A DNA stretch of 64,000 bases from Phyllobates terribilis (GCF_046119375.1 NW_027362768.1:369830001-369894000), one strand, 5' to 3'. Positions 15,943 through 57,581 are shown, counted from the stretch's first letter. Notes: generated from the sequence alone by a model not told the origin. Numbers and translations: made by a program.

Positions 15943-18900
15943 ATGGAGGCCGCCGGGATCGGGGGCAGCGCTCCGGAACATGACGAGGAGCCGCCGATCA
16001 GGGACCGGCTCGCCGGAATCCAGAAGGGGAACAGCGTGTGCTCCCGCTCGTACTTCGTGGTGGTGATGGTGTTCGTGCACGTCTACATCCTGAATGTCAT
16101 CGCGCTGCTGCTCTACGTCTACTACAGCAACGGCAGCCAGAGCGGAGAGGACACCGGGGGACCGATCGCCGCCGTCAGCACCCCGGCCCCGGAGCACAGA
16201 GCCCCCCTGCGGCATGAGGACGGCGGCGCCCCGTACAGCTACCTGCCCCGGCTGGAGGGCATTAAGGTGGGTGACGGCCCCTGGTCATGTGACTGCCGCT
16301 GTCAGCGCGTGGGGAGGTCAGGTGACTTTTACAGCAGAGGTGTAAAGTGAAACGAGAAGTTTCCCATAGCAACCAATCAGAACGTCGCTTTCTTTCCATG
16401 TGGCTGCCTAAAAAAATAAAAGCAGCCAGCTGATTGGCTGCTAGTGTTAATAAGTGAATGCGCCCCCCTATAGGTGACAGGGACGGACTCCAGTAATGCT
16501 GGAGTGTTTCCCACCAAGGTCCGATGTCTGGGGGCTTTCACTCGTCACTAGAAGGGGCCCCCAGAGAGGAGAATGGTGCAGCGACCCTGCACACAGACAT
16601 AGGGGGCGCCGTCTCCATGGTTGTACCTAGCGGCCGCTCGCCGTGTTTCCTCCTCGCCTTTATTATTTTTCCGCTCCATATAACTGAGGTGACGTTCCTA
16701 TTGGGACCATTTTGGGGTCCAGACGACTTTATCTTTTTATTTAGGAGGTGAAACGACCAAAAATCAGCGATTCTGACAGAAGGTTTTATTTTTTTTTAAT
16801 TCACCGTACGGGATAAATAATCCGATATTTTATGACGCAGTGGTGACACCAGATAGGGGGATTTCTCATGATGCTCCTCCTGTATTTTTTACAGTTTTAT
16901 TCCTGCCATCTTTTGTACATTTCTCTGCTTTGATGTCGCTGGGTATTGTATAATTATCCATCTCCTATGGAGACGCAGGTGTAGAAACATGGCCGACACG
17001 GGCCCTCGGTAGCCCCCACACTGGTTGGTGCAGGCTCAGCTCCTGACAGCGCTCCATACATACAGAGCCGAGCACTTGTCTGCTGCACCAGATCCTGCAG
17101 CCCCCCAGCATTGCAGGCGAGACCCCCGACCCACCTGTAAGCAAAAAAGATTAGAGGCATCAATTTGTCTGGACTTGATCTCAAAATTTGGGACAGTTGT
17201 CATACAACCCTGCAGCTGCACTTTAGGTTGGAGGACATTTTCTATCTCTACCACCTGCGCCGGGGTCCAGCAAGCCCCTCAAGAGCCCTCCGACGCAATC
17301 AATCCTCTGCATTATCAACATCTCTGATTGCTGTCAGTGAATTGAAGCAATCTTGTATCCAGAAGCTGCAAATTAATCCTATTGGCTTAAGTGCACATAC
17401 AAGGGGATGCGCTGATACATTGTAACGAGTCTTGCACCGGTGTATACAAATGATACAAGTATCTGAAATTCTGTGTTATAGTAAAGTGTTCCAGACGAGG
17501 GACATGCTGGGAGTTGTAGTTTTGCAGCAGTTGGAGAACCACCGTCCTACTCCTTGGACCGCTGGCAAACTATGGCGTCCTCTGCAGGGGAAATGTAGTG
17601 TAACATAGCAGCTGATAGGATGAATGGACGTCCATGTAATACAAGGTTGGTTTGTTTTTTTTGGAACGGGAACCGCTTATATTGGTCATAAGGCGAGCTC
17701 CTGAGCCGGGGCCCCCTCCATGGCATGGATAATAATGAGATAACCCCAGTTGTATAAATGATGGCGCCCCAGATGTATGGCAGCAGTGCTATGTACGGGA
17801 GATCCTTCCTGCAGCCCACAATCTCGCGTCTCCCTTCTTGGCGGCCGATCTGATCGCAGCGGACATCGCCGCACTGTCGGAGGACGACACAGTTGCCGTC
17901 TATGCCCCAGTATACGCCGTATCCACAGGGCTCTGCTTATTCTTAGCCTGACCTATTTCTGATAATAAATTGTTATTTATTACTTCCTATATCTGCACTT
18001 TATTAAAGGGGTCGTCCAGTTTTTTCTGTTTTTCTCGGCTTGCTGTCAGTGGACGGGAACGTTTTTGTTTATATCCAGAGATCGTAAATTCTTAAACTAC
18101 ATCCTGACATAATGGATGAAACCCACGTGTGATCCAACTCACGGATCGTGCTGCAAATTCACTGTGGATTTCACCACCATGAAAATCTGCGGTCAGCTCC
18201 TGGGCCCATCAGCAGTCCAGAGGAATCTGCAGACATTACATACCGGTGTGAACCCGGCCTTAGTCACAGCCATTTAAAGGGGTATAACCACGGATCAGAA
18301 GAATTAAAGGGCCAAAGCATTAATTTAGCTCTGCAGCCCCTTCATTGTTTTTCCATGCCCCTGGAATTGGTGAGGGTCCCACTCATCGGACCTCCGCAAT
18401 TATCCAGCTATGCCATCACTTCATCAAATCGGATTAACACTTTCAGCTCACAGAGGATTATCTAGGATACAGCTGGGGGTAATCTGCTGTGAGAAGTATA
18501 AGGCTGTGTTCACACTGGAGTTTTTTTGGGAGCCTAGTTGCAAAAATAGAACATTTTGCACAACTTTTTGTACAATTAGAATCAACGGCTTTCCACTGAC
18601 AGCTATGACTTCCCCATACACATATACCCAGAAACAGCTGATAACAGAGAACAATAGATGATATCCAGCCGTGTCGTAGACTGAGATGAGTCAGGCTTTA
18701 AGCGAATAGTTCACTTCTAGGTACAACTATTATTATTTTATTTTTCTTTAATACATGTATTTGGAGCTAAATATCATTTTTGCTTTTCGGTTTCATAAAA
18801 GATACTGCACTGTTTGACTTTTACAGGCTCTTTTGTTCCTCTGCACATTCAACTTTGATGTGGTCATAAATCAGCCGAGAGGAGCTCAGAAAATGCAGAT

Positions 18901-21900
18901 AAAAGATAAAAACTGTCCCATCGGACCGTCAGAATGAGCTCGCTGACGGATTCTCAGTTTGCTCATTCTGCAGTCAGAAACAGACAATGAAATACGGAAG
19001 ACATAGAAGGCAAACAGTGCACAATTTTTTTAATAAAAACCCCAATTTAAAAAAAAAAAGATTTTTAGCCAAAAATACATGTATTTAAGTAACAAAAAAA
19101 GTTGGACGAGCCCTTTAAATGCCCCCCATACACGCTAAATTGTCACATGCTGCATAATCCCGGTATTATTCCATCGCTGTGGGACTTTTCTGCTTTGACC
19201 GGACCTGGATCTTAGATTTCTGTACAGATTCTAATTCCTGTGAAGGAATGTGTCTTAACCTCCAGTGACCCCAGTAAGTTCCAGCCCCTCCGGTCAGGAC
19301 CTCGTACATTCAGCTCTCCCTCCCCCATTCATTGTGTCCATCAAACTCCAAGTGGCCCTACTTTTGTCCCATTTTCTTGCTTTGTATCTAGGTTATAAAT
19401 TAATGATCTGACCATCGAGACCCTCACTGAGCACGAGAGCAGGGATCCTGTGTCGTCCCCGTCCCCCCCCACCCCGTATGAATAAAGCTGTGGTGCGCAT
19501 GCGTGGCTTTCTTCTACGGTCACACATGCGCATGATCTATCTGCGGACACTGGACCCCATTCTTGTGATCAGATCCCCTCCGATCAGAGTGCTGCTGTTG
19601 CGATCTGCTGATGATGAATCTTCCATTTTCCTGTGGCGCCACCACAGGACGAGAGAGGTATTGCACATTGCTCTGGCCACCAAATGCATGGATATGTCCT
19701 GGCTAATACATGTGAGACCCGAAGGATCGTACTGATCGCTCCTCTCTTTCAGGTCGGCTACAAGCAGAAAGTGGAGCTGGGCAACAACAAGCTGTACGAC
19801 ATGAAGACGCTGAGCCTGAAGCCCCTGCTGTTTGGTAAGCGTTGAGCCCCCCGTGACGTAGGGGCATGTAATCGTCTTAATGCCGTAGGATGGGGGGGTA
19901 GAAATGAGCAGCAAATCAGCAGATGTAATCGTGTCTGCATAGGGGTCACGGGGTCCGGCCGCTCTGTAATCCCCCAGATCCCGCGCTGCCGCCTTCCTGC
20001 AGATTTCATCCCAATGAGCGAAGCTCCCTGGTCTCCTGCACATAAGCATCCGGTCTCTGGGCCAGGGGACCCCAATAAGTGACGCACACACCAGACGTTT
20101 ATTACAGCCACACGTGTATTGGTTTCCATCCCACATATATACAGAGCTATATACAGTCATCAGGCTCGGCACCTTCTCTTTTACTCTAGGGCTACACACC
20201 AAAACCAGCGTTATGCTGCCCGGTAGAAGGGCTACTTGCCATCACCCCGGGTGGTTCCTCGCGATTTTTGGTGCATTCATCAAGATTTGTCGCACTCATG
20301 ACAATCATGATTTAAAGGGGTTGTCCACAGCTTGTTTCTGAAGCAAGAAAAGGCTAAAACCCATGACATACCGGCTTCAACGTCCACGGCTCCCATGCAG
20401 CCAACTCTGGGGTCTACCGCAGGACAGGCGGCAATGATATCCTGTTCTTTGGTCACCTGACTGCTGAGGTTTGTGATTGGCTGCAGCGATCAGCTGACTG
20501 GAACGATTTCATCATCAGATGACATCCCATTGCAGTCACCTGCAGCCAATCACAAAGCTCTGCAGTCAGGTGACCAGGATGTCATGGCTTTCTGACTTGC
20601 CGTTTAGTTGGACAACCCCTTTAATAAGTCGCTGCCTTTAAGGACGTCTTTCACCAATGAATAACAGTTATCTGTTCCCAGGAAAGCTGTGTGACCACCT
20701 CTATGGCTTCCATTACCGCACCCACCTTCTCCAGGAGATCAGGTCTGCCCAGCCACCGGGGGGTGTAATGGCGGCCATATCTGATGTCACCCAGCTTTCC
20801 CAGGATTAGACAGACTACGATACAGCAAAGGATAACGCAAGGCTGAGATTTACTGGTGATTTGCTGATTATTAGGGGGAACTGTTCATGCGCAGCCGCCG
20901 CCCCGGGGGTCCTACGATCTGCACTTGTGATGCTTCCATTTCTTGGCAGCGAAGTGCAGGTTCTTGTTCCTCTTCTGCCAGGCGTAGGCTTTGTGCACCA
21001 CGATCTTGTCTTCTTGCACGTCCCCGCTGACGACATAAGCGCCCGTCCGGGTCCCACGCATTATGTTCTGCACACACGTGGCATCCAGGTCCAGCCACTG
21101 CTGGAGTCTGGGGAGGATGTCCCCCCTGGACAGCGGGCCGTGCTTTATGACGTCCACCCTGGAGTCCATGTCAAAGTCGGAGACGGAGCTGGAGGTCGTG
21201 TTCCTCTTTGTGATACGAATTTTTGCAGCTGCAGAAAGAAAGAATAAAAGATGGAGCCGCGCGCAACTCCTGGCGCTCCCTCCACCCGTACGGAGCCGCG
21301 CGCAACTCCTGGCGCTCCCTCCACCCGTGCGGAGCCGCGCGCAACTCCTGGCGCTCCCTCCACCCGTGCGGAGCCGCGCGCAACTCCTGGCGCTCCCTCC
21401 ACCCGTGCGGAGCCGCGCGCAACTCCTGGCGCTCCCTCCACCCGTGCGGAGCCGCGCGCAACTCCTGGCGCTCCCTCCACCCGTGCGGAGCCGCGCGCAA
21501 CTGTCGGCGCTCCCTCCACCCGTACGGAGCCATCGCGCAACTGTCGGCGCTCCCTCCACCCGTACGGAGCCATCGCGCAACTGTCGGCGCTCCCTCCACC
21601 CGTACGGAGCCATCGCGCAACTGTCGGCGCTCCCTCCACCCGTACGGAGCCATCGCGCAACTGTCGGCGCTCCCTCCACCCGTACGGAGCCATCGCGCAA
21701 CTGTCGGCGCTCCCTCCACCCGTACGGAGCCATCGCGCAACTGTCGGCGCTCCCTCCACCCGTACGGAGCCATCGCGCAACTGTCGGCGCTCCCTCCACC
21801 CGTACGGAGCCATCGCGCAACTGTCGGCGCTCCCTCCACCCGTACGGAGCCATCGCGCAACTGTCGGCGCTCCCTCCACCCGTACGGAGCCATCGCGCAA

Positions 21901-24900
21901 CGCTCGGCGCTCCCTCCACCCGTACGGAGCCATCGCGCAACTCTCGGCGCTCCCTCCACCCGTACGGAGCCATCGCGCAACTCTCGGCGCTCCCTCCACC
22001 CGTACGGAGCCATCGCGCAACTCTCGGCGCTCCCTCCACCCGTACGGAGCCATCGCGCAACTCTCGGCGCTCCCTCCACCCGTACGGAGCCATCGCGCAA
22101 CTCTCGGCGCTCCCTCCACCCGTACGGAGCCATCGCGCAACTCTCGGCGCTCCCTCCACCCGTACGGAGCCATCGCGCAACTCTCGGCGCTCCCTCCACC
22201 CGTACGGAGCCATCGCGCAACTCTCGGCGCTCCCTCCACCCGTACGGAGCCATCGCGCAACTCTCGGCGCTCCCTCCACCCGTACGGAGCCATCGCGCAA
22301 CTCTCGGCGCTCCCTCCACCCGTACGGAGCCATCGCGCAACTCTCGGCGCTCCCTCCACCCGTACGGAGCCATCGCGCAACTCTCGGCGCTCCCTCCACC
22401 CGTACGGAGCCATCGCGCAACTCTCGGCGCTCCCTCCACCCGTACGGAGCCATCGCGCAACTCTCGGCGCTCCCTCCACCCGTACGGAGCCATCGCGCAA
22501 CTCTCGGCGCTCCCTCCACCCGTACGGAGCCATCGCGCAACTCTCGGCGCTCCCTCCACCCGTACGGAGCCATCGCGCAACTCTCGGCGCTCCCTCCACC
22601 CGTACGGAGCCATCGCGCAACTCTCGGCGCTCCCTCCACCCGTACGGAGCCATCGCGCAACTCTCGGCGCTCCCTCCACCCGTACGGAGCCATCGCGCAA
22701 CTCTCGGCGCTCCCTCCACCCGTACGGAGCCATCGCGCAACTCTCGGCGCTCCCTCCACCCGTACGGAGCCATCGCGCAACTCTCGGCGCTCCCTCCACC
22801 CGTACGGAGCCATCGCGCAACTCTCGGCGCTCCCTCCACCCGTACGGAGCCATCGCGCAACTCTCGGCGCTCCCTCCACCCGTACGGAGCCATCGCGCAA
22901 CTCTCGGCGCTCCCTCCACCCGTACGGAGCCATCGCGCAACTCTCGGCGCTCCCTCCACCCGTACGGAGCCATCGCGCAACTCTCGGCGCTCCCTCCACC
23001 CGTACGGAGCCATCGCGCAACTCTCGGCGCTCCCTCCACCCGTACGGAGCCATCGCGCAACTCTCGGCGCTCCCTCCACCCGTACGGAGCCATCGCGCAA
23101 CTCTCGGCGCTCCCTCCACCCGTACGGAGCCATCGCGCAACTCTCGGCGCTCCCTCCACCCGTACGGAGCCATCGCGCAACTCTCGGCGCTCCCTCCACC
23201 CGTACGGAGCCATCGCGCAACTCTCGGCGCTCCCTCCACCCGTACGGAGCCATCGCGCAACTCTCGGCGCTCCCTCCACCCGTACGGAGCCATCGCGCAA
23301 CTCTCGGCGCTCCCTCCACCCGTACGGAGCCATCGCGCAACTCTCGGCGCTCCCTCCACCCGTACGGAGCCATCGCGCAACTCTCGGCGCTCCCTCCACC
23401 CGTACGGAGCCATCGCGCAACTCTCGGTGCTCCCTCCACCCGTACGGAGCCATCGCGCAACTCCTGGCTCTCCCTCCACCCGTGCGCAGCCGCGCGCAAC
23501 TCCTGGCGCTCCCTCCACCCGTGTGGAGATGTGGCAAAACTACAACTCCCAGCATGCTTTAACCAACCTGCAGCTCATCGGCTGCTGAAATACTATGACT
23601 CCCAGCATGCCCTGATAGCTCGATAATAGAACATTACCCAGCCGATGCCGGGGCATGCTGGGACTTTAGCTTTTCAGCAGTCAGAGAGCCACAGGTTGGA
23701 ACCCCCCATACTGATTAACTAGTTGCTGGATAACCCAATGAATGGTTTCTTCTAAGGCAGATATACGCTGCAGTAGATGGTATATACTGTATACTGCTAA
23801 TACCCACCGGCGCTGCTGGATGTGGACGTGACGTGACATCAGCCCGAGCCTTGTGTCTTTATATGGTCCCAGAGCCGGTGTCAGCGGCTGTAATTTACTT
23901 TTCCAAGGGGGGCTCCCGTCACGTCTCCCCCCATACACAGGGCTCGCCTCCTGTATATGCAGCGCGGCTTCCGAGACAGAAAGCATGACTTTCCAAGGCA
24001 TCTACGCCTCGGACGAGCGCCGCTCTGGAGACGACACGGCCATTTATGGGTCTGAACTATTCAGCGACAGATGGTTCACCTGCAGCAATGTATCATCGCG
24101 CCACCTGTTCGCCTAAAATTATCCATGGATAGGAAAATCTTGCTGCTTCCTTCCAGAAACGGCGCCATCCCTGTGCACAGATTGCATCTGGTATTGGAGC
24201 TCAGCTCTGCTGCAATGAATGGGGCTAAGCTGCAATACCAGTCACAGCCTGTGGACAGGGGTGGCGCTGTTTTTGGAAAAAAAGACAGACCTGGTTTTTC
24301 CAACCCTGTACAACGCATTTAAAATCTTTTTTTTTTAAACTTAACTGATTCATTAACTTTAAACGGGCTGCGGTCGGTGGGGATCAGCAATTGGTTGATT
24401 ACGCTGCAGCGCCACCACAGGATGAATGAAGTATTGCAGGCTGCCCATTGAAATCAATCCATGTGTCAGATCCTCCAGAGTGGGGAGCTCTCTTGCAGAT
24501 AAGAGGGTCTTGAGTAAGCCCCCTCCACCCTACCCATTAATTAATGATGAGACGGAAGGGCAACAACGCAGGGAAAAGATCAAAGGGAATTTGTGTGACT
24601 GCCCCTGGCGGCAGCGTAGATGGACACTGAACTGTTGGCATCCGTCTCCCCCCTGCCGTTACCTGTACCCATTTACAATGGGCACAGATGACGCTGGCAC
24701 AAGTGCAAGCTTCGCTAAGTGGCGGCAGCACTCGAGGTGCAACATGTCAGCACTTACTGAAATCATTAGCACAGAAGGTATCCAGGATCTCCTTGGCAGA
24801 GCTGGCCTCGTCGAGTTCACAGTCCCTGCAGCTGGCACGGGGCACCGCTGTAAGAGGAGAGGAGCATTAGTATCCGGGGTCCTATATAGCCCCAAATATA

Positions 24901-27900
24901 CCGGAGCCCCTCTATATCCGGTGATCGCCCGTCACGTTCATCAGTTATTCTTGACGGAACCTGAGTTAGAACGTCGGTGTCTGAGACGCGTCACCCACGC
25001 GTCCAGCAATGCTGGATGACATCCGCAGAAGATCGGGGGCAGTCCTCCAAGATGTTTGGAACAAGCCCCCTGCCGAGATCCTTCTAAGACTGTGTGTAAG
25101 GGACAAGTGACCATGAAGACGTTATGATGGTGACGGGCGGTCGCCAGATACTGATGGGATTTACATTTCTCTTTTTGTTCATTCTCTTTGCATTTTTATA
25201 ATTGATACAAATAAACTATTATCACTTCTATTTTTGGAAGCGTCTTACGCTGCAATATTTTTTCCACACCTGCCTAAAACTTTTTTTGTTTCTCGCTAAT
25301 ATGGAAACCATCATCAAGCAGGCTAGCGCCTGTGCACAGAGCTTATTATAGCTTTATTATAATAGTAATAAGTGTATGACTCTTTTACACCAGAAAATGT
25401 GCACCAGCAGAATAGTGAGTGCAGCTCTGGAGTATAATACAGGAGGTAACTCAGGATCAGTAATGTAATGTATGTACACAGTGACTGCACCAGCAGAATA
25501 GTGAGTGCAGCTCTGGAGTATAATACAGGAGGTAACTCAGGATCAGTAATGTAATGTATGTACACAGTGACTGCACCAGCAGAATAGTGAGTGCAGCTCT
25601 GGAGTATAATACAGGATGTAACTCAAGATCAGTAATGTAATGTATGTACACAGTGACTGCACCAGCAGAATAGTGAGTGCAGCTCTGGAGTATAATACAG
25701 GAGGTAACTCAGGATCAGCAATGTAATGTATGTACACAGTGACTGCACCAGCAGAATAGTGAGTGCAGCTCTGGAGTATAATACAGGAGGTAACTCAGGA
25801 TCAGTAATGTAATGTATGTACACAGTGACTGCACCAGCAGAATAGTGAGTGCAGCTCTGGAGTATAATACAGGATGTAACTCAAGATCAGTAATGTAATG
25901 TATGTACACAGTGACTGCACCAGCAGAATAGTGAGTGCAGCTCTGGAGTATAGTACAGGAGGTAACTCAGGGTCAATACAGGATCATTAATGTAATGTAT
26001 GTACACAGTGACTCCATCAGCAGAATAGTGAGTGCAGCTCTGGAGTATAATACAGGATGTAACTCCGGATCAGTAATGTAATGTATGTACACAGTGACTG
26101 CACCAGCAGAATAGTGAGTGCAGCTCTGGAGTATAATACAGGAGGTAACTCAGGATCAGTAATGTAATGTATGTGCACAGTGACTGCAGCAGCAGAATAG
26201 TGAGTGCAGCTCTGGAGTATAATACAGGATGTAACTCAGGATCAGTACAGGATAAGTAATGTAATGTATGTACACAGTGACTGCACCAGCAGAATAGTGA
26301 GTGCAGCTCTGGAGTATAATACAGGATATATTGTGTTGGACGTCACTTACTACTTCCGCCGGTTCTTGTGTCGTTGCTAATAGTGGAGATACACATCCCA
26401 TGATCAATAGGAAACTGTTCACACTTCAGTATTTCTGGCCACGGGTACCCATAGCACGCCATGATGGGGGCACAGCTGGTCCTCACCGCCTCGCACAGGC
26501 TCCGGCACGGCTTTATAATCCTGTCACTGTAGACATGAGGATGTCATTATTAATTCTAGAAATCACATTTCAGTAACATTTCCCCCTATAATCGGTGTAA
26601 GCCCCTAAGTCGTCGTCAGTTGGAGGATGATCAGTTTGCCGCCTTGCAGTCATTCCCGGTGACAACCCTCCTGGTAGCTGCGGTCACCTTGGTTGTCAGC
26701 CAGCTTTCCCAGACACAGATGTAGCTAATATACTGCCGGCAGGGTGCCGGCCGCCCCTGGTTAGCTGCCATAATCCCTAATCCGCGGCGCTGGGCTCTGG
26801 CGGTAGGTGGCCCTAATTCTGTTGTCAACTTGTATGATTCACTGAAACAAAGAACAGGAGACTCAGCTCTGCCCAGAGAGCCGGAGTGACGCACGTACGG
26901 CTCCATCAGCCGTAATTCAAGGAGACACCCCACAATGCCAAAACCACTAATGGGAAAACACGGCTCCTAATTACCGTGCCAATGACGCAAGTAAGAGTGG
27001 TAAGTCCACATGTGCAGCCAGGAACATAATCGCATCCCCCAGAGGGTATCGGCAGCGCTCTAATGGCCCCTAATGTCTAAATGTCAGGGACGCTCTCGAC
27101 CTTCAGGACGCTCTACTCACTGACGTGCTGCAACCTGGGCTCGGCTCTGTGATAACCCTACACGTTCATGTATCACATGCCAGCGATGGCCGACTGTCTA
27201 TGCTGCACTTTGGAAAGCTCGGGCCACACACTGTATGTCGGACTTATCCAGAGGGTCCGATTCGGCTCGCAGAGGTCAGAATAGTGTCCTTTTAGCCCCC
27301 ATTGGGCATCACGTTGCCCGATGCGATATCATATCCCAATTCGGAACTGATGATGGGCACAAATGGCACGGTTTGGCATTTGCACCCACTGCTTGGCAAG
27401 CTCGTCGTTGGTGCTCCCCCCCCCCCTTTATGCCCTGATCATACATACAGAATGGAAGTGAATAGTTCGAGGGGTACTTTACCCATCCAGACATATCGGT
27501 GCCATTAGCGAGCACAAGAAGATTCTGGCATCCGGGTGGCATTCACGGGCAAGGAGCGGCAGCCAACTGGAAGATTGCTGGATCACCTCCGCCATCGTCT
27601 CGTGCTCCAGCAGATTGGGAATCCTCATGTCTGTATATCCGATGCCATAACATAGGGGCATGTGCTTGGGGATGGTCATACACCGGGACGAGCTGCTCAC
27701 GTACATCGCCCCAGAGACACCGGTCCAAAAACAGAGCAGGACGATCAGATGCCACTTTGGGTATTGGCATCCGGGGCATCTGCCCTGCCATGCACTCATC
27801 ATCTTCATCCCTGCACAGGCGACTGAGTCTCCCCGTAGCCCCAAGCTTGGGGTTTTTATAGGGCCGGGGGACACTTTTTCCTACTAATCCTTTCTCATTA

Positions 27901-30900
27901 AGATCCAGCACACTTGGACAAGACAATCCCACAGTTTGCGTTTGCCAATGGGGCTGATTGTTTGGTCTTGTTAGGGGGGCAGCTTAAACCAGCAGGTGTC
28001 GTAATAGGGGCCGACAAGGAGGCTGAATGTTTGAACTCTCCGGCCTGGCATTATCTCGACCCATTATTGTACTCATGATTGGATCTCTGCTGGAAGCCAT
28101 TTGTCCACCAATCCCCCCCTTTTCTCCGATTTGTGATCATTAACCATTACGTGTTCCTCCTGGCTGTTCTCAAGACACAAAAAAAACAATCATTTATTGA
28201 CCCGGGAGCAAAGGGGGGAGGATAAGTCAGGGCTGTTGATTTAGCCCTGGGGGCGCTCAAACAACCCGTGATGGGACGCCGGGCTCATTAAATGTTTTCC
28301 TTTTTAAAACAATCCTCCACGTCTCATTAAGTTTTTTTAGGATCTGGAGATCAATCACGATGTCTTTTGCTGGGGTGGAAAACGAAAAAAAAATCACATT
28401 TATGGGTTTAAAGGGAAATAAAAAAAAAAATCAAAGTTTTTGAGTTGTTCTTTATCAGTATAGCCGCCCCTACAGACCTCACAGGGGTAGTGAGCAAACT
28501 TCCCCGGACATCTCAAAGCACCGAGGAGGCAAATTCATCTTTTGGGTTGGGTCACAGCATGAGAAATATGTGCAACTTTTGATTTGGGTCCCATGCATTT
28601 TTTGGGGGACTTTGGCCTGAGGTTTCGGGCCAGAATGAAGAGAGGACTGGTTTGGACTCCTTTGCTCAGAGTATCTACAGTTTCCTAAACTTGGCTCAGT
28701 GATTAAGTTCTCTCCTCTTGTCTTGTGTATGAATACCCCAGCCTATAGAAAGTGACTTGTTAGCGCCCCTCCAGGCACCTAGACCCAAGAGGGACATGTC
28801 TTGTCTGCCACAAACCCTAACTATACACCCAAAGTCACAAAAAGTTCCATCCATCCTCTGAACTACCGGCCAAGACGGCTGAGGTCCCGGCCAAGACGGC
28901 TGAGGTCCCGGCCAAGACGGCTGAGGTCCCGGCCGACACGGCTGAGGTCCCGGCCGACACGGCTGAGGTCCCGGCCAAGACGGCTGAGGTCCCGGCCAAG
29001 ACGGCTGAGGTCTGGCCAATCCATATTTTGTGAGATATATGTCTCTTAAAAGATCGAACTACATTTTTTTTTTCTTTATCAAAATGGATCCACAATTTCT
29101 TCCTGAATTATTTATTAGTGCCAGAACTCAGTTTTCTGAAACCAAGCACCAAATCTCCAGCACTGATTTAAAATGCAAGAATTAAAGGGGTTTTCCAGTT
29201 TTGGAAATTCTTCCTACCCCGGTTGCAGTTTATCTTTAAAAAAAACAAAAAAAAAAACAACAACCTGGGCTCTACTCGCCCTCTCCAGCTCCAGCACTGA
29301 GTGTCCACCGAGGCTCCCGGTCTATGGTATTGTCAGCAGCACTGACGGAATGACGACAGCACTGCAGCCAATCACAGAGCTCAGTGGCTCTGCCTGAGTT
29401 AACAGCATGAGCCGCTCAGAGCTGCTGAGCTTACTGATCGGCTGCAGCGCTGCAGAAAATAACAGACTCCGGGAGCAGTGGGAGAGACTCAGCATTGGAC
29501 CCTTGGAGGGTGAGTAAAGCACCGCTGAGGAACAGGGGATTTCAGAAAATGGAAAGCCCCCTTTAAATTCTGCTCTTACCACTTAGGGGGACTGAGTTTC
29601 ACCTGATCACCTTTTCACTTCATAAGAAGTAGATATCCGAACACTGGGGTCCCACTATTGATCTCAAGAATAGAGGTCCCGTGTCCCCCATTTAAGCGGA
29701 AAAGTGGTCGCACGCGCTTTGGGGCTCCAACATTGAGCGTGGCACTCGTCACCAGTCACATGCACAACGCTCCACTCAAATGGTGGACACAGGACCCCTG
29801 ATCTTGTGATCGGCGGGACCCCCAGAGATGAGACTCATCACCTATTTTGTATGTTAACCCCTTAAGTTCTGTGTCTTGTTAATCTGACACCGTGCCCCCC
29901 TGTTTCTTATAACATTCCCAATCCCGTTTTTTGCAGAAATCCCCAACTTTTTATCGGAACAGGAGTGCAAGCTCCTCATCCACCTGGCCCAGCTGAAAGG
30001 ACTGCAGGCCAGCCAGATCCTCCCCGTGGACGGCTACAAGGAGGCCATGGAAAATCTGGAGATAAGCAAGGCCGACATCTTCAATCTGCTGGATCACAAT
30101 CAAGACGGGCAGCTGCAGATAAAAGAGGTGAGGAAAGGGTTAAACAACTGCAGGGGCATTCGGGCTTAAAGGGGGCTCTGCTATCCACCTGGGCAACTTT
30201 GTAATATACCTTGTTTTGGGTTATTCACACCTCTGTTTGCTGTCAGTGAATGAGAAGCAGTCCGGACTGATACTTTTTACCTAAACTGATACATTGTAAC
30301 AAACTATGTGTGGCGCTGTTATGTCTGGGCTCTCCCATATGACTCTTGTCTATTCTCAGGATGATTGATGGTCTCTGTGGTCAGACCCACACTTGATCCT
30401 CAAGTTATCGCCTATCCTTTAAATAGGTGATAACTTTAACTGTCGGGAATATCCCTTTAAGGAGTTATTTCCCGTCCTCATACATAGATATATAGTCTGA
30501 TAGTACTTTTAAATCTAAGCACTTTTGCCATTTACTGCTTGTTAAAATTTTCAGCTGTTCTTGAGATATTCACACTTTTCTTATTGTTTCGTAGCTCGTT
30601 GCCTAGGAGACCGACCACCACTGCTGTCGATAGCTTGCAATCGCTGCGCTGAAGCTGGCCAGAGTTAGGAGTTAACAGCACACTCCAGCGATCCTGGACA
30701 GCTTCAAAACAGCAGGAGAAAAGAACTTGTAAGCACTGCATATGTTCTGAAGTCTAACAGCAGTGGTCGGTCTCCAAGGCAACGAGCTATAAACTAAAGA
30801 AAAGTGTTAATATCTGAAGAACGGCTGAACATTTTAATAAGCAGTAAAGTGCAAAATTGCTTGTATTTACAAGTAAATTTATATTTTTTAAGCTGGGAAT

Positions 30901-33900
30901 ATCCCTTTAAGGCTTTATCTATAGGGAAGGAAAATCTCTTTAAACTGGGTACAGGCTAAAAATGATTTTCTGTAGTATCTCTTTAAGCATTTTGCACCGT
31001 CTACAGGCACCACGCTGCACTGTCTATTGCTGACTGCAGAATGAGTTAACTGAGAATCGGCAAGTGAGCTCATTCTGCTTTACTCCTTCTGAGCTCCTCT
31101 CAGCTGATTAATGACCACCTGAAAGTTGAGGTCACCTGAGAAGGAAGATAAAAGTTATACACTCTCCTATCACAAGGAGCTCACTGATGAATTCTCAGTT
31201 AACTCAATTTTCATGTTTGGTAAACCTCTGCTTGCTGTCAGCAAGTGGTAGAAAGGTGCTAAGGACATCAGACTGATACTTTGTAACAAGCTACCTGGAC
31301 TGAAGAGAGATCACCTAGACTGGGTGCAGTTGTAACAAACCCTCAGTTGTGAGAAGTATTAGGTTTATATGTTTTTGGGTTGTTTTTTTTTTACTTCAAA
31401 CAGGGTTGTGAAGGGGTTAATATGAAGGGGGCTCGCTATGCGCTGGCCACGGGGGTCTTGAAGACCTCGTACTGTACACAAACTCTTCTTCTTATTCTTA
31501 GGAAGATGCTCGAACGCTCATAAAAGCCATTATGTACGGCCATGTTTATATTCTGCTCTTCCCTTACCCATTGTGAAAGAACAGACCCTCCATCATCGGT
31601 GGCACGCACCACATAAACATGCCCGCCTCGCCAACATTTCATTTTTATTGCCAGGGGAACGGGCGTTTGGCTCCGACCCATATAAAGCAAGTGAATGTAT
31701 AGCGAATGCACGGACCCAGCGAGGTCTGCAAAGCCCACCCGGAGCCAGACGTGTCCTGCAGGTCCGGACCCCCGGATATTTACCGATGCAGCAACGTATT
31801 AATCCTGGAATTCTGACCCTATAAAAATCAATAGACAGATACACTGCATGGAGATAAGTATGTGCCCCCCACATCCGCCTCCAGGAGCTTTTCGCAGCTC
31901 CCATACTACATCCATAGACATTAATATGGAGTCGCCCCTCTGCAGATATAACGGCTCCGATCTTCTGGGAAGGATTTTTACAAGATGTTGGTGGCGTCTG
32001 TGGAAATTTTTGTCACTTCATCCATTAGAGCATTTGTGAGGTCAGACCCTGATGTTCGGGGGTCCGGGCTCACAATCTCCATTATAGGATGGGGCTGGGG
32101 TCTGTGCTGCCGCTCATGTTCTCCCCTCCATGTCTGTATGGACCTTGTGCACTGGGCACAGTCATGGGGAACAGAAAAGGGTCTTCCCCAAACTGTTACC
32201 ACAAAGCTGGAAGCTACAATTGTCCACAATGTCTTGTGCTGAACAATTATGATTTCCTTTCATTGGAACGAAGGGCCCAATGCCGACCCCTGATAGCAGC
32301 CCATAGCATTATCCTCCACCATCTGTACAGCGGGAATCACCAAACCCAGACTCCTTCATCGGACGCCGATAGAGAAGTGCGATCCGTCACTGCACAGGAC
32401 ACATCTCCACCAGAGTCCAGTGGTGGCAGCTTTACACCACTCCATCTGATGCTCGGCATCGTGCTTGGTGATGTACGGCTACATGCAGCTGCTCGACCAC
32501 TAAGCTCCCGGCGGGGGCGCAGTGTTTGCACTGATGAGGAGATCTGGACTCTGCAGTTATAGGGTCAGCAGTGACTTTTCAGCCGTCTGCTCCTCACCAC
32601 TCGGCCCCCCAGCGTTACGGGGTCTCCACTTCGGATACGGATAGATATGAGGTATATGGACGGTCAGACATGGGTTAATTCCTGCTTCTCATCAGTATAA
32701 TCGTCCAGTTATAATGACCCGCTGTCTCCGCTGCTCATTAGACCCCAGGGTCGCGCTGTTCACACTAGGAGGCATCAGGCTCTGCGCCGCCCGGCATCGG
32801 GGTAGAGGGGATTTATAGATGAGGACGGAGCATTTCCTCTCTCTCCGTGCTGCAGTAATTGACCCTGGACTTTTACATTGTAGCATTAATATTATTTTAA
32901 TCTCTTCTGCAGGTATTAACCCATTCCCGCCTGGGTAACGGCAGATGGATGACGCCCGAGAATATCCGGGAAATGTACACAGCTGTTAAAGCCGACCCTG
33001 ATGGAAACGGTGAGCCACTCAGTGTCAGTCTGCTGCCGCACGGCTCGCAGTGTTTATATCACCACACCGTCCCGGCTTCGTCTTAATGGATGCGGTCTCT
33101 CGAGTGCTTGGAATAGGATTAGGATAGAATTTCCGCCATGTAGTGGCTGCTAAACTGTAAAATACCGGTTCACTTACTTAATAATGCGTCTCTAGCACTG
33201 GGTTAACCATTTATTTCACTTCTGTTCTCAGTGGGTAACTTAAAGGGAACACGTCGTCAGAAAATGATAGTTTTGTGTTACATGCATTTTTAAAATATAT
33301 ATATTTTTTCAATATAAATTTGCAAGATTTCTATTTTTTTTTAATACAGACCGTGATATGGAAAAATCATAAAAAAAAATACATTTATCACAAAAACCTG
33401 ATTAAAACAATCGGCTCTCTTCGGGTTATCTGATTTAGTATTTTGCAAACTTTTTAGAACTTTTTCCATGTATATTTATTATTTGTGAAAGGTGAAAACC
33501 AGACCAAGACGCTATAAATGTAATAACATCCCTCTGTCTATACGGACCCCAGACCAAACCCGTAAATTTATCAGCCACCCCCCCTTCCCTAGCTAAGACC
33601 CCTAAAATTAATAAAACCTTAGACCGAACCGCTAAACTCATTCAGACACCAAAAAGTAATTTTGGACCCACTGGAAAATTGTTCCGGACCCCTAAAATTA
33701 ATTCCGACTCTAGATCAAACCCCCTTAAAATTTTATATCTGAGGCTGAAACACCCCTATACAATTAGCCAGCCCCCCAGAAAACATCCCTAAAATATTTT
33801 CAGCCACAGATCAGACCTGGAAAAAAAGTAACAGATCCCCAAAAAATAATTCAATCCCAGACCCCTATAATTAATTCAGACCCTAGACTCAAACCTCTAC

Positions 33901-36900
33901 TAGTACTCCATGGTATTCAGGTTCAGTACCCAATATCTGCAGAGCATTGCACTGTCTGCAGAGCATTGCACTGTCGGCAGATCATCCCTCAAGAACACAA
34001 GGCTTAAGACATTGGAAATAATTTCCAGCCCTGGAAGGAAGGTAGCGTGTCCCCCCTGAGACGGAGCAGCTCCAGACATCAGTAATGCCTGCACTGACTC
34101 TAATGTAGGAATGCATAGGACTGCCGGCCGCGGACATTACACAGGACTTCTTGTCTTTTATAGGGGTCCTCAGTCTGGAGGAATTCAAGAAGCTGAACCT
34201 CAGGGACTTCCACAAGTACCTGGGCAATCGAGAAATCACCATGAACGACCTGGTGAGGAATAGTCAGCACACCTGGCTGTACCAGGGAGAGGGCGCCCAC
34301 CAGGTGCTGAGGTCCATACGCCAGCGGTGGGTATACAGGGCAGGACCGGAGACAGTCACCCCCGTCCCCCCCTCTCCCTGTACCTATAGGAAGTAAGGGG
34401 TCAATGCACGAAATCCACCTTGCATTCTCTTAAAATCCACATCTCGTGCACATGAATCAATTCTGCCGCCCCGTTCACACACAGAAGATAATTTTTGTGC
34501 AGATTTTTTTTTGCTGCCACCATAGAAAAAAAAAAGCAGAAGACGTTCTCAGATTCTGCACCGAAAATCCGACTGGGTGATAACGAGGGTGTTCCGTGAT
34601 CTGCGGCAGAAATCCGAGGATCGTGTCCTAAGGTCCTAGTTCACACATGTCCTAAGGTTTAGTTCACACGGAGTTTTTCAGGCGGAAACCGCTGCAGAAA
34701 TCGCTCAGCGTCACTTCTCGCTTTCCATTTCTGCAGTTGGCAGCGATTAATGGTCGCCCATGAAGGGTGTAAATCTCCGATCTGATCGCCTCTTTTCTGT
34801 GACTCCGTCCTACAGTAATTAATGGGGGCAGGTCCTGCACTGTGCGGTCAGAAGGGGATCGCAGACCTCGGCCCCTGCATAATCCGCTCTATTTACTGAG
34901 CCTAATGTGGTGTTAATGGGGGGGGGGGGGGCGGCGGAGGAAATGAGAATCCGGCCTGTCCTGTAATTATCAGCAAACAGCCCGGGAATCCGCAAACACG
35001 GCCGCCCCCCTGTTTACTGCCATTCACTTTGTCCTAATTAATACCATGCGTCGACCAGAAGGATTTATTAGGGCCGTGTTCACACTCCGCATTGAGACGC
35101 TGAAAACGCCACAAAGCAAAACTCTGTGCATGTAGAGATTTCTTCACTCGCTGGCTATAAAACTCTGAGAAATAAGTGCCGCAAACAAAGTTGCACTAGT
35201 TTTAAAGTTTTCATCCATATGCGATAACTGGGGGTCCGAGCGCTCAGACTTAGGGGGGGGGGGGCTGGAGGTGCCGCAGTCCTGTGGAGTGAATGCATCA
35301 CGTGAACTCCGCTCCATTCAGACAAAGCCCCAATCTTGGGATGGATGGGGGTCCTATCGGTCAATCCCACACCGATTATTCAGTTATGGGGGACGACTTG
35401 GTGCACACTTGTTTCAGCGCTGATTTGCAGCCTGGGAGCTTTAAAGTGCTTTTTTTGGGGGGATTTTCAGCACATTTCCAGATTTGAGATTTTATGATCC
35501 AACATTGTTGAATTGCGGTGAGCTGCAATACCAGACACGACCTAACCACAATAGTGGCGCTGTGTCTGGGCCAAGAGAAAAAAAAAAACACCCAAACTCT
35601 TCACATGACAATATTACAACCTTTTGGTTTATTCCCTTTTTTTTTTTTTTTTTTTTTTTTTTAGAGTCATCAAATTAACCCATCTGCCCCCCGATGTGGT
35701 GGAGAACAGCGAGCCCCTGCAGGTAGTTAGGTACAATGCCGGCGGCCATTATCACGCCCACATGGACAGCGGGCCGGTGTTTCCGGAGACTGCGTGCGCC
35801 CACACCAAGCTGACGACCAATGAGAGCTCGCCTTTTGAAACCTCCTGTCGGTAAGAGCCCCCCGATTCCCCCCCCCCCCCCCGTCACTACCCCTGACATC
35901 TGCCCTGTGCCCCTTCCCAGACATGGCCCTAGACAGATATAGAAATGCTGCCCCCTGCTGGATATATAGACATATGACGTGTTCACACCCATGTGCTGTG
36001 CTTTCTTGCCAGGTACGTCACCGTTCTCTTCTACCTAAACAACGTCACCGGCGGCGGAGAGACCACGTTCCCCATCGCTGATAACAGGACCTACGAGGAG
36101 CTGGTGAGCGGCCGCACAATAATGGCCTCCATTAATGGGGTCTTCCACTAGCACTGTACTTCGTCCTCGGAGGTCGGATGCCCACCGAAGCCCCCGGCTC
36201 CATTCAGGATGGGACTGTACAGGATCTCTGGAGTGCCGGGGGTCCCACCTACCCCAATGATAGGGGGGATAGCTTTCAATTTTAGGAAACAGCCTTTAAT
36301 TCTCCCGATTACACAATTCATATTGAGGTCACATCGTTCCCATTCATTGTCTTATTTTTCTCGCTTTTCTTAGTCTTTGATCCAGAACGACGTGGATCTG
36401 AGAGACACGAGGAAACATTGCGACAAGGGGAACCTGCGGATAAAGCCGCGGCAGGGAACAGCCGTCTTCTGGTACAATTACTTGTCCAATGGCAAAGGTA
36501 GGCCGGTGACCAGCAGCAACACCGGGATCTGGGGACTGGCTGCATCGCGGTCTCCTCAATACCCATCTATTTTCCACCAACTTTTTTAGGATAAAGGACC
36601 AGGGAGGCAGAAAAGTTGCAATTTTTAGCATCGTTATCCCTTATCCAAAAGTGATCATGTTTCGATGCCAGAGCTGCGTCGCCCGACCCTTCATATAGCC
36701 CCCTATAGAGTGTAGTCATAAAGCTCTACTAGCAGCCACCACTAGAGGGAGCCTGGGAGCTAATCGCATACAGCCGTCTCCATCCTCATCATTATTTGTC
36801 TATAACGGTCGGTTGGGTTCATATGTAAATAACCCACCTGGAGGTATTTTTTAACATTTTTTCCTGCGCCACGTCTACTTTGGACACTATATTTTTTGTT

Positions 36901-37651
36901 AATACAGCGCTATAAATACCTTGTATAGTCATAGACTTCCATTTTACAATTCTGTCTGCCTGCAGTGACCACTAGAGGGCGCCTGTGAATTCACTGTATA
37001 CAGTCAGCTCTAAGGCTCCCTCTAGTGGTGGCTGTAGGTAAAAAGAATTTTATCATTAAACTATGATTTATGCAAGAGATTTGGAGCTCTGTGATTGTAA
37101 ATAAGACGTAATGATAAAGGTCTGTCTGTAGTCTTAAAGGGGATGTCCAGGACTAAGTTACTGATGACTTATCCCTACCCCGACGCCTGCACTGCTCAGA
37201 TCAGACCTGGAGCCTTGGCTGATGGCAGTTCACAGTGTAGGAGCTGGGATACCCCAGGTCTGTGGTGAATCTGATCTGAGCAGTGTATCCAGCACCAGAT
37301 ATTGGCTGATCCTCGGGGGTACCAGGTGTCGGACCCCCACCGATCTGATATTGATGACCCTACCCTAAGAATAATCTCATAAGCATCCTGGTCCTGGACA
37401 ACCCCTTTAAGTTTTGTTTTCCCCCACCCTTAGGCTGGGTCGGGGACGTGGACGAGTTCGCCCTCCATGGCGGCTGCCTCGTGACCGAGGGAACCAAGTG
37501 GATTGCAAACAACTGGATCAACGTGGATCCCAACAAGGCGCGACAGCTGTGGTTCCAGCAGGAGATGGCCCGATACGCCCAAGACGAGCAAGAAAGCCAG
37601 AAGGAGTGGACGGTGGACAAGTCGTACAAGGACATCCATGTGGACTTATAG
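15943..37651 (+). CDS. p4htm: Transmembrane prolyl 4-hydroxylase, complete, 9 exons, 491 aa
   Basis: Exons 15943-16266, 19753-19834, 29937-30127, 32913-33009, 34164-34326, 35665-35850, 36013-36103, 36374-36497, 37434-37651 (1476 nt, in frame). Features: TM helix [25 protein letters not shown], two EF-hands ([24 protein letters not shown]), Fe(II) ligands HxD (HAHMDSG) and H (ALHGGC), 2-OG Lys (TKWIAN), C-terminal HVDL. Confidence 0.97.
20098..20103 (-). terminator. Candidate poly(A) signal of crescent
   Basis: AATAAA on the - strand (plus TTTATT) followed by GU-rich gtgtgtgcgt; the first canonical hexamer I found downstream of the stop at 20912. Confidence 0.45.
20316..20620. mobile_element. 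T2/Kolobok-type MITE with internal inverted repeat, in the predicted crescent 3' UTR
   Basis: TTAA|AGGGGTTGTCCA...TGGACAACCCCT|TTAA; internal arms ggtcacctgactgc...tgtgattggctgcag / ctgcagccaatcaca...gcagtcaggtgacc. Confidence 0.75.
20912..21228 (-). CDS. frzb2: crescent exon 4 (NTR domain)
   Basis: ttctttctgcag|CT GCA AAA ATT...[11 protein letters not shown]...[20 protein letters not shown]...HHKCRS TAG. Confidence 0.93.
20912..27808 (-). CDS. frzb2: Crescent (secreted frizzled-related protein, sizzled/crescent clade), complete, 4 exons, 300 aa, nested antisense in p4htm intron 2
   Basis: Exons 27808-27483, 26520-26351, 24847-24758, 21228-20912 (326+170+90+317 = 903 nt), all GT-AG, phases 2/1/1. 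Signal peptide, Frizzled CRD ([104 protein letters not shown]) and NTR domain ending KWKHHKCRS*, matching crescent as I recall it. Confidence 0.93.
21253..23523. repeat. GC-rich 39/40-bp minisatellite, about 57 units, crescent intron 3
   Basis: Unit ggagccatcgcgcaactctcggcgctccctccacccgtac (40 bp) in the centre; 39-bp variant ggagccgcgcgcaactcctggcgctccctccacccgtgc at the ends. Confidence 0.95.
24758..24847 (-). CDS. frzb2: crescent exon 3 (90 nt, absent from ORF track)
   Basis: ctcttacag|CG GTG CCC CGT GCC AGC TGC...(T)[30 protein letters not shown]|gtaagt. Confidence 0.92.
24950..25285 (+). mobile_element. Degraded Tc1-like remnant (transposase C-terminus and right TIR)
   Basis: CAGTCCTCCAAGATGTTTGGAAC (VLQDVWN-like) and ...acacctgcctaaaactttt, which resembles a Tc1 terminus. 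Confidence 0.45.
25401..26326. repeat. 86-bp minisatellite, about 10-11 copies, crescent intron 2
   Basis: Unit gcaccagcagaatagtgagtgcagctctggagtataatacaggaggtaactcaggatcagtaatgtaatgtatgtacacagtgact; repeated ORFs are offset by 86 nt. Confidence 0.93.
26351..26520 (-). CDS. frzb2: crescent exon 2 (170 nt, absent from ORF track)
   Basis: gtgacag|G ATT ATA AAG CCG TGC...[57 protein letters not shown]|gtaagt. Confidence 0.93.
27483..27808 (-). CDS. frzb2: crescent exon 1 (signal peptide and CRD N-half)
   Basis: ATG AAG ATG ATG AGT (MKMMSAW...[25 protein letters not shown]...APICLD) GG|gtaaag. The exact start Met is inferred. Confidence 0.88.
27853..27860 (-). promoter_or_regulatory. TATA box of crescent
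   Basis: TATAAAAA on the - strand, 45 nt upstream of ATG 27808, preceded by a GC-rich run. Confidence 0.6.
28866..29012. repeat. 21-bp minisatellite, 7 copies
   Basis: ccggccaagacggctgaggtc, with ccggccgacacgg variants in two central copies. Confidence 0.92.
29186..29562. mobile_element. T2/Kolobok-type MITE
   Basis: TTAA|AGGGGTTTTCC...GGAAAGCCCCCT|TTAA. Confidence 0.7.
30461..30906. mobile_element. Palindromic TTAA MITE (related copy near 15000-15390)
   Basis: TTAA at both ends; arms agctcgttgcctaggagaccgaccaccactgctg / cagcagtggtcggtctccaaggcaacgagct. Confidence 0.65.
32140..32330 (-). mobile_element. Degraded Tc1 transposase remnant
   Basis: The - strand reads as a corrupted VPMKGN..QDI.DN....LW.QFGE.PF segment of a Tc1 catalytic domain. 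Confidence 0.45.
37138..37406. mobile_element. T2/Kolobok-type MITE just upstream of the last p4htm exon
   Basis: TTAA|AGGGGATGTCCAGGAC...GTCCTGGACAACCCCT|TTAA. Confidence 0.75.
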
Positions 37652-43500: not shown

Positions 43501-45140
43501 AGTATTATAGTAGTTATATTCTAGTACATAGGAGCAGTATTATAGTAGTTATATTCTTGTACATAGAGGGCAGTATTATAGTAGTTATATTCTAGTACAT
43601 AGGAGCAGTATTATAGTAGTTATATTCTTGTACATAGGGGACAGTATTATAGTAGTTATATTCTTGTACATAGGGGCAGTATTATAGTAGTTATATTCTT
43701 GTACATAGGAGCAGTATTATAGTAGTTATATTCCTGTACATAGGGGGCAGTATTATAGTAGTTATATTCATCTCTATAGGGTGTAGTATTATAGTAGTTA
43801 TATTCTTGTATATAGGAGGCAGTATTATAGAAGTTATATTCTTGTACATAGGGGGCAGTATTATAGTAGTTATATTCTTGTACATAGGAGCAGTATTATA
43901 GTAGTTATATTCCTGTACATAGGGGGCAGTATTATAGTAGTTATATTCTTCTCTATAGGGTGTAGTATTATAGTAGCTATATTCTTGTACATAGGGAGCA
44001 GTATTATAGTAGTTATATTCTTGTACATAGGAGGCAGTATTATAGTAGTTATATTCTTGTACATGGGGCAGTATTATAGTAGTTATATTCTTGTACATAG
44101 GGGGGCAGTATTATTGTAGTTATATTCTTGTACATAGGAGGCAGTATTATAGTAGTTATATTCTTGTACATAGGGGGCAGTATTATAGTAGTTATAATCT
44201 TGTACATAGGGGCAGTATTATAGTAGTTATATTCTTGTACATAGGGGGCAGTATTATAGTAGTTATAATCTTGTACATAGGGGCAGTATTATAGTAGTTA
44301 TATTCTTGTACATAGGAGGCAGTATTATAGTAGTTATATTCTTGTACATAGGGACAGTATTATAGTAGTTATAATCTTGTACATAGGGGCAGTATTATAG
44401 TAGTTATATTCTTGTACATAGGAGGCAGTATTATAGTAGTTATATTCTTGTACATAGGGACAGTATTATAGTAGTTATATTCTTGTACATAGGGGGCAGT
44501 ATTATAGTAGTTATATTCTTGTACATAGGCGGCAGTATTATAGTAGTTATATTCTCGTACATAGGGGCAGTATTATAGTAGTTATATTCTTGTACATAGA
44601 GGGCAGTATTATAGTAGTTATATTCTTGTACATAGGAGCAGTATTATAGTAGGTATATTCTTGTACATAGGGGGCAGTATTATAGTAGTTATATTCTTGT
44701 ACATAGGGGCAGTATTATTGTAGTTATATTCTTGTACATAGAGGGCAGTATTATAGTAGTTATATTCTTGTACATAGGAGCAGTATTATAGTAGGTATAT
44801 TCTTGTACATAGGGGGCAGTATTATAGTAGTTATATTCTTGTACATAGGGGCAGTATTATTGTAGTTATATTCCTGTACATAGGAGCAGTATTATAGTAG
44901 TTATATTCTTGTACATAGAGGGCAGTATTATAGTAGTTATATTCTTGTACATAGGAGCAGTATTATAGTAGGTATATTCTTGTACATAGGGGGCAGTATT
45001 ATAGTAGTTATATTCTTGTACATAGGGGCAGTATTATTGTAGTTATATTCCTGTACATAGGAGCAGTATTATAGTAGTTATATTCTTGTACATAGGGGCA
45101 GTATTATAGTAGTTATATTCTTGTACATAGGGGGCGGTAT
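40558..45140. repeat. 35/36-bp satellite array, about 4.6 kb (roughly 130 units), between p4htm and uqcrc1
   Basis: Unit gcagtattatagtagttatattcttgtacatagggg with a variable G-run or ggagc. Confidence 0.96.
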
Positions 45141-45180
45141 CATAGGTGTTAGCCGTGTAATCGCCACTAGAGACCTCCTA

Positions 45181-57536: not shown

Positions 57537-57542
57537 AATAAA
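57537..57542 (+). terminator. uqcrc1 poly(A) signal
   Basis: AATAAA about 200 nt after the stop codon. Confidence 0.65.
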
Positions 57543-57581
57543 GTTAATTTAATCAATGTGATTGGTACTGAAAACTTCACA

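Follow-up and report, generated by a model that had tools for sequence, protein, structure and literature searches.

The window analysed here, a 64,000-nucleotide (nt) stretch of the genome of the frog Phyllobates terribilis (GCF_046119375.1 NW_027362768.1:369830001-369894000), carries the gene p4htm on its plus strand and, antisense within p4htm intron 2, a second gene of four exons (minus strand, 20912-27808). This guest is, with a probability of roughly 0.92, an intact orthologue of crescent (frzb2), which codes for one of the secreted frizzled-related proteins (sFRPs). The exons of guest and host are given below, with positions counted from the first letter of the window and slashes marking splice boundaries.

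27483-27808, minus strand: crescent/frzb2 exon 1, coding; ATG at 27808, donor GG/GTAAAG, phase 2, ending ...ICLDG; holds a signal-peptide-like N-terminus and the first half of the Fz cysteine-rich domain (CRD)
26351-26520, minus strand: crescent/frzb2 exon 2; second half of the Fz domain; acceptor CAG/G, donor A/GTAAGT
24758-24847, minus strand: crescent/frzb2 exon 3; linker and start of the netrin-like (NTR) domain; acceptor TTACAG/CG, donor A/GTAAGT
20912-21228, minus strand: crescent/frzb2 exon 4, coding; rest of the NTR domain; acceptor TCTGCAG/CT, stop codon TAG at 20912-20914
15943-16266, plus strand: p4htm exon 1, coding; start codon and transmembrane stretch
19753-19834, plus strand: p4htm exon 2; donor TTTG/GTAAGC; matches residues 38-64 of human P4HTM (6tp5), E-value 0.05
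29937-30127, plus strand: p4htm exon 3; acceptor TTGCAG/AAAT; matches 6tp5 residues 61-129, E-value 5e-23
about 32910-33014, 34130-34327, 35663-35851, 35993-36121, 36374-36499 and 37427-37648, plus strand: later p4htm coding blocks, boundaries approximate

A guest gene of four exons in p4htm intron 2

A first-pass annotation, made from the sequence alone, had proposed a complete crescent/frzb2 gene antisense in p4htm intron 2, with four minus-strand exons at the positions listed and a 300-amino-acid (aa) product, between p4htm exon 2 (ending at 19834) and exon 3 (starting at 29937). Splice sites, phases and domain matches bear out the four exons, the host boundaries proved exact, and trees and synteny uphold the complete gene and its placement. 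The product length also stands, provided that the exon-2 acceptor is taken at 26520, the orthologous site. All three introns are of the GT-AG type with compatible phases, and the spliced frame encodes 300 aa. The same annotation had remarked that two of the exons are missing from the open reading frame (ORF) track and that one is fused to a repeat, which agrees with the ORF and repeat tracks: exon 3 has no ORF, exon 2 has just one of 47 aa, and exon 4 is in frame with an 868-aa pseudo-ORF from the tandem repeat at 21253-23522. Crescent escapes ORF-based tracks for two reasons: a pair of its exons is short, and another is joined to this repeat-derived pseudo-ORF.

Two in-frame acceptor AGs lie 6 nt apart at exon 2, TCTACAG/TGACAG/GATT (26520-26527). 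Splicing to 26520 yields 300 aa, while the upstream acceptor at 26526 yields 302 aa with Asp-Arg inserted. The exon 1/2 junction of chicken, pika, electric ray and sea bass (GAC AG/gt...ag/G NTN AT.) aligns with the frog junction GAT GG/gt...cag/G ATT ATA, the annotated protein of Ranitomeya has ICLDGIIKPC here, and the cysteines flanking the junction have 7 residues between them in 13 of 13 aligned homologues, as they do in the 26520 model. For these reasons acceptor 26520 is preferred. An initial 302-aa model using 26526 was dropped after the junction had been compared in the four other species. The upstream acceptor may still be used.

The host is equally recognizable. Exons 2 and 3 of p4htm join contiguously on human P4HTM 6tp5, the blocks between 32910 and 37648 follow the same order as in P4HTM of chicken and pika, and the chicken gene with the EF-hand and 2OG-FeII_Oxy_3 domains is matched by nine coding blocks in all, in collinear order. 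Single exon pieces of p4htm gave no informative Pfam match. Intron 2 spans 10,102 base pairs (bp); p4htm exon 2 is 1,077 bp away from the stop codon of crescent, and p4htm exon 3 is 2,128 bp away from its ATG.

Identity and signature residues of the guest

Database matches to the protein come in this order: the dendrobatoid frogs Ranitomeya variabilis (302 aa) and Anomaloglossus, other anurans, Xenopus tropicalis 'frizzled related protein 2' and X. laevis frzb2.L, followed by a salamander, turtles and chicken 'crescent'. Over the whole protein, identity to R. variabilis is 92-93%; X. tropicalis frzb2 follows at 72% and chicken crescent at 66%, and identity falls to 38% for a teleost sizzled, 38% for a crocodilian SFRP5 and 32% for a caecilian SFRP1. 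Exon 3 is 81% identical to chicken DNA over 105 nt, and for exon 4 identity reaches 91% with Ranitomeya and 71% with frzb2 of X. tropicalis.

Trees were built from the database homologues and from full-length sFRP-like representatives of an exhaustive profile-free search, with names obtained through cluster look-ups. The P. terribilis protein pairs with Ranitomeya at 100/100 on a short terminal branch (0.04), within an anuran group that includes Xenopus frzb2 (support 80/97; 98 by the Shimodaira-Hasegawa-like approximate likelihood ratio test, SH-aLRT, in a quick tree). Tetrapod, coelacanth, shark/ray and ray-finned lineages fall in species-tree order, and a crescent plus sizzled clade is recovered at 100/100, apart from SFRP1/SFRP5 at 99/98. 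The first-pass identification of the gene as crescent is matched by the trees, which group the protein with Xenopus frzb2 and chicken crescent and away from SFRP1/5.

Most database names suggest something else. The annotated orthologues are nearly all called SFRP5-like, SFRP5, SFRP1 or SFRP2, 'secreted frizzled-related protein 5-like' being the usual form, and the best solved-structure match is Xenopus Sizzled, so the guest could be taken for a sizzled or a true SFRP5. The chance of this is very small. True SFRP5 of birds and crocodilians forms, with SFRP1, the separate clade just described, at 32-38% identity; SFRP1/5 lack an extra CRD cysteine and have Glu in place of Asp in the CLD loop. 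Sizzled, at 38% identity, sits on a long separate branch, and its copy in the smelt Osmerus lies outside p4htm. The named members of the P. terribilis protein's own group are Xenopus frzb2 and chicken crescent. Sizzled is the nearest solved relative because the PDB has no crescent structure.

The domain content fits the crescent assignment. Pfam Fz matches exon 1 over profile positions 3-63 (E-value 1e-13) and exon 2 over 69-108 (E-value 2e-11), two complementary halves of one domain, and all ten Fz CRD cysteine columns are conserved in the homologue alignment. The best structural match of exon 1 is to Xenopus Sizzled 7el5 (E-value 6e-23), and exon 4 aligns to the Sizzled NTR domain, residues 168-267 of 275 in 7el5 (E-value 6e-18). 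The protein ends at residue 300, directly after the last NTR cysteine, and, as in other sFRPs, there is no transmembrane part. The N-terminus, conserved with Ranitomeya, shows by eye a basic N-region, a hydrophobic core and the small-residue motif VSGA ahead of the CRD.

In the crescent/sizzled subgroup, the two domains are linked by a disulfide, Cys115-Cys156 of Sizzled (Szl), and Szl Glu44 and Asp92 are both required for BMP1 inhibition, Asp92 tipping a loop that enters the protease active site; Crescent likewise inhibits BMP1/Tolloid proteases (PMC9437010). The equivalents of the two cysteines, C131 and C172, are both present in the P. terribilis protein, and the bond between them is predicted from the alignment; at the first of these positions SFRP5 has Ser and SFRP1 has Phe. 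Asp92 corresponds to D108, in the motif C106-L-D108, where SFRP1/5 have Glu, and Glu44 corresponds to D60, a conservative change from Glu to Asp at a position that SFRP1/5 fill with Lys or Arg. None of the 16 structural cysteines is missing, nor is any of the signature residues. As judged by alignment, P. terribilis crescent carries all the crescent/sizzled signature residues tied to BMP1/Tolloid inhibition.

The exon 1/2 junction falls within the D108 loop, and use of acceptor 26526 would extend precisely that loop by Asp-Arg. The Sizzled counterpart of the loop that would be altered is the one that enters the BMP1 active site.

Comparison with the closest known systems sharpens this picture. 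Xenopus crescent (frzb2) and chicken Crescent have the same four coding exons and the same CRD plus NTR architecture. The P. terribilis gene differs from them in reading CLDG for CLDR, with Gly for an otherwise conserved Arg, as in Ranitomeya; in having Asp for Glu at the Szl Glu44 position; in carrying a second, in-frame AG, 6 nt upstream of the acceptor of exon 2; and in the enlargement of introns 2 and 3 by two young tandem-repeat arrays. Sizzled (Xenopus 5XGP, 7EL5), the nearest solved structure for both domains, shares the interdomain cysteines, a CLD loop tipped with Asp and, at Szl 44, an acidic residue, the determinants of BMP1/Tolloid inhibition described in PMC9437010, but differs in its overall identity of about 38-40%, its separate long branch and its other neighbourhood in Osmerus. 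SFRP1/SFRP5 share the domain order and the ten CRD cysteines, whereas they have CLE rather than CLD, a basic residue at Szl 44 and a CxC pair in the NTR domain, and are without the extra CRD cysteine.

Promoter, repeats and RNA coverage

Several further features of the intron bear on whether the guest is an autonomous and working gene.

27821-28011, minus strand: putative crescent promoter, in the host intron, from a motif scan and frog-chicken alignment
27860-27853, minus strand: TATA box TATAAAAA, conserved between frog and chicken
27826-27821, minus strand: initiator (Inr)-like TCAGTC; the motif CTCAGTC is conserved between frog and chicken
27901-27885, minus strand: TAAT/GGATTA homeobox-type motifs; CTTAATGAG..GGATT is conserved between frog and chicken
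20098-20625, minus strand: candidate 3′ untranslated region; ATTAAA at 20625-20620 and AATAAA at 20103-20098, from a motif scan
21253-23522, no strand assigned: minisatellite of 57 copies of a GC-rich 40-bp unit, copies 99% identical; makes up most of crescent intron 3
25400-26326, no strand assigned: tandem repeat of 10.5 copies of an 86-bp unit; in crescent intron 2

About 100-200 nt upstream of the ATG lies a conserved block (27907-28011) that aligns to chicken by blastn at 72.6% over 106 nt and contains CACCTG, AACAAT/ATTGTC and CCAAT-like motifs. In the alignment, CACCTG, AACAAT, ATTGTC, CTTAATGAG..GGATT, the TATA box and CTCAGTC are all conserved between frog and chicken, and are not evident in pika. 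We take the TAAT/GGATTA motifs to be of the homeobox-type class, as a prediction of factor binding only. These conserved motifs fit an autonomous crescent promoter within the host intron. At the other end of the gene, the candidate polyadenylation signals are 260 bp or more from p4htm exon 2 and within the intron, so the mature crescent and p4htm RNAs would not overlap.

The two arrays within the gene appear young. The 40-bp minisatellite, whose near-identical copies argue for a recent expansion, ends 23 nt short of the exon-4 acceptor AG and gives rise, on both strands, to pseudo-ORFs that run without a stop for about 780-870 aa. The 86-bp family reaches a summed word depth of 10^4-10^5 in the contigs of all four RNA runs searched, and must therefore be abundantly transcribed, or abundant, somewhere in the genome. 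Several other species also have related words in their RNA and DNA runs. Elsewhere in the window, further tandem arrays are found at 40500-45200, 57500-58200, 60150-63500, 1300-1860 and 28866-29019; they include one AT-rich, strongly GC-skewed array of about 4.5 kb, short-period ones with long stop-free frames and, within p4htm intron 2, a repeat of 7 copies of 21 bp placed between the promoter of crescent and p4htm exon 3.

The four RNA runs of P. terribilis are of adult type only, and the stretch compared with them covered exons 1 to 3. Their word shares of 0.07-0.16 derive from the 86-bp intronic repeat and not from the exons, and RNA contigs covered no other unique intronic sequence of this stretch. 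One run, X1, yielded two informative contigs. A 285-nt contig matches 24758-24826 and ends exactly at the exon-3 donor, with its 216 further letters lying elsewhere. This is the pattern that a spliced exon 3/4 transcript would give, and lends it weak, partial support. A second contig (27729-27874) spans the start of exon 1 and has its far end 14 nt upstream of the TATA box.

Several observations weigh against reading the guest as an intact crescent orthologue, or against parts of its model. Among the four RNA runs, X1 alone touches the crescent exons, at a word depth of 1-3; exon 2 has no coverage, and no contig spans a junction inside the stretch compared. As the second X1 contig passes the TATA box, either transcription starts further upstream or the contig derives from p4htm pre-mRNA. 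Acceptor 26520 was chosen over 26526 from orthology alone. The signal peptide is a candidate, read by eye. The Pfam NTR model gives no match to exon 3, to exon 4 or to the full-length Ranitomeya protein, and the NTR assignment consequently relies on homology to Sizzled. Finally, the long sizzled branch attaches within the crescent plus sizzled clade without resolution, leaving a sizzled-free crescent clade unsupported, and for this reason the decision between crescent and sizzled is drawn from identity and synteny.

The near-absence of RNA, together with the two large young repeats in the crescent introns, one of them 23 nt from an acceptor, would also suit a crescent that is intact in sequence but silent or decaying, as a very young pseudogene, or a segment misassembled into the intron. 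Either is highly improbable. The ORF is open, with the 16 structural cysteines and signature residues kept, 92-93% identity to Ranitomeya and a terminal branch as short as 0.04. The splice signals follow the canonical pattern, and between the repeat and the exon-4 acceptor there remain a pyrimidine tract and a motif, TTTAT, that resembles a branch point. Misassembly is argued against by the same gene order in six other species and by an independent P. terribilis DNA sample, which contains 94% of the sampled words of 26340-27900. RNA silence is expected of an intact crescent as well, since early embryos, the stage of its expression, were probably not the source of these runs.

Age and meaning of the nest

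An antisense Fz gene inside a gene with EF-hand and 2OG-FeII_Oxy_3 domains is found in the public gene calls of six species: chicken (with neighbours WDR6 and ARIH2), Ranitomeya, the opossum Monodelphis, the pika Ochotona, the electric ray Narcine and the sea bass Dicentrarchus. When frog p4htm exons 2 and 3 were mapped to chicken, pika, ray and bass, the guest lay between them in all four; nesting in Ranitomeya and opossum was judged from gene ranges alone. The first-pass annotation had left open whether the arrangement was already annotated in Xenopus or chicken. It is visible in the public gene calls of chicken and in those of the five other species, so the nesting is not new, and the finding in P. 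terribilis is correct but ordinary. A search of the literature found no paper describing crescent/p4htm nesting; one trout paper merely names p4htm and sfrp5 as neighbours of slc6a8a.

Because the nest is common to ray, teleost, frog, bird, marsupial and placental, it is, on this comparison of gene positions, inherited from the common ancestor of the jawed vertebrates, cartilaginous and bony. The sizzled gene of Osmerus occupies a different neighbourhood, beside a MOV10-like helicase and outside p4htm. Judged from these gene maps, crescent orthology is cleanly marked by a place in p4htm intron 2. The gene structure, the orthology, the signature residues and the sharing of one intron across vertebrates can all be read directly from the sequences compared.

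Around the host, an ARIH2 exon lies upstream of p4htm at about 261-479 (plus strand), and ARIH2 is also a neighbour in chicken. Downstream, at 46700-54000 (plus strand), are several exons of a UQCRC1-like gene of the mitochondrial processing-peptidase type; in chicken and pika, unlike P. terribilis, the downstream neighbour of P4HTM is WDR6. The fish 'sfrp5'/'sfrp2' genes in p4htm intron 2 (sea bass, electric ray) belong to the crescent group and not to true SFRP5, and since these nested genes group with crescent, the fish database names are misleading. Many teleost crescent copies carry a long N-terminal extension, which brings them to a total of about 380 aa.

The first-pass annotation had also repeated that crescent is absent from placental mammals, which does not hold. 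Kuraku and Kuratani 2011 (PMC3296468) had concluded that the gene was lost before the placental radiation. Annotated crescent-clade proteins are nonetheless present in several placental groups: Camelus, Vicugna, Talpa, Saccopteryx bats, cat, fishing cat, seals, otters, mink, ferret, pika and rabbit, and one Camelus record even bears the name 'crescent precursor'. The placental proteins form one clade beside those of marsupials, with a long stem branch and short terminal branches, and retain all structural cysteines; such a branch pattern suggests a burst of change followed by constraint. The pika gene has four intact exons matching the predicted protein and is nested in P4HTM intron 2. No description of placental crescent copies was found in the literature searched.

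In Xenopus, crescent is expressed in the organizer and anterior endoderm, binds Wnts and inhibits Tolloid (literature cited in PMC9437010 and PMC3296468). For the P. terribilis protein we infer secretion, Wnt binding, Tolloid inhibition and embryonic expression from its homology to Crescent and Sizzled of Xenopus. The 300-aa protein, with its signal-peptide-like N-terminus, Fz CRD and netrin-like domain, would be secreted; outside the cell it would bind Wnt ligands through the CRD and competitively block BMP1/Tolloid proteases with the Asp-tipped loop C106-L-D108. This two-way extracellular action is the most likely one by analogy with its relatives. Interplay between crescent and p4htm is speculation.

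The nest itself is most simply read as a frozen arrangement, in which a compact gene with its own TATA promoter came to lie in one intron and was then hard to separate from its host. Long retention is expected for any small gene that sits within a single intron, because a rearrangement that separated the two would break the host. Other opposite-strand nested vertebrate genes are of the same kind, with their own promoter and polyadenylation signals, within one intron and without exon overlap. The crescent nest is notable among them for its age alone, spanning cartilaginous fish, teleosts and tetrapods.

A different view would have the nesting functionally constrained, with shared regulatory DNA or head-on polymerase interference having preserved it since the origin of jawed vertebrates. 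The first-pass annotation had named transcriptional interference and shared enhancers as possible, and of the findings here it is the age of the nest that bears on them. The same intron and orientation in ray, teleost, frog, bird, marsupial and placental would suit such constraint, as would the promoter block conserved between frog and chicken within the intron, including the TATA and TAAT/GGATT elements shared with the proximal promoter of chicken Crescent, itself antisense in P4HTM intron 2; placentals that keep crescent, moreover, keep it in place. The mature mRNAs are nevertheless without overlap, lying 1,077 bp and 2,128 bp clear of the p4htm exons, and species reported to be without crescent still have P4HTM (PMC3296468), from which it follows that the host does not need the guest. 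Functional constraint is unlikely. An equally unlikely extension holds that the nest is a regulatory unit under selection since the first jawed vertebrates and that crescent has been lost repeatedly, lineage by lineage, and not once at the placental base. Were this true, P4HTM intron 2 of the lineages with losses would keep exon remains or the promoter block, and the losses could be dated.

The finding of an intact crescent gene nested in its host has consequences of different reach. For the P. terribilis genome the result is a point of annotation, a real developmental gene missed by ORF-based tracks. For the sFRP family, the nest is a simple and very old synteny marker that separates crescent from sizzled and from true SFRP5, and by it many genes of fish, reptiles and mammals called 'sfrp5', 'sfrp2' or 'SFRP5-like' are crescent orthologues. 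The textbook placental loss of crescent no longer holds for camelids, carnivores, bats, a mole and lagomorphs, and the account of how mammals lost early axis-patterning genes needs to be retold.

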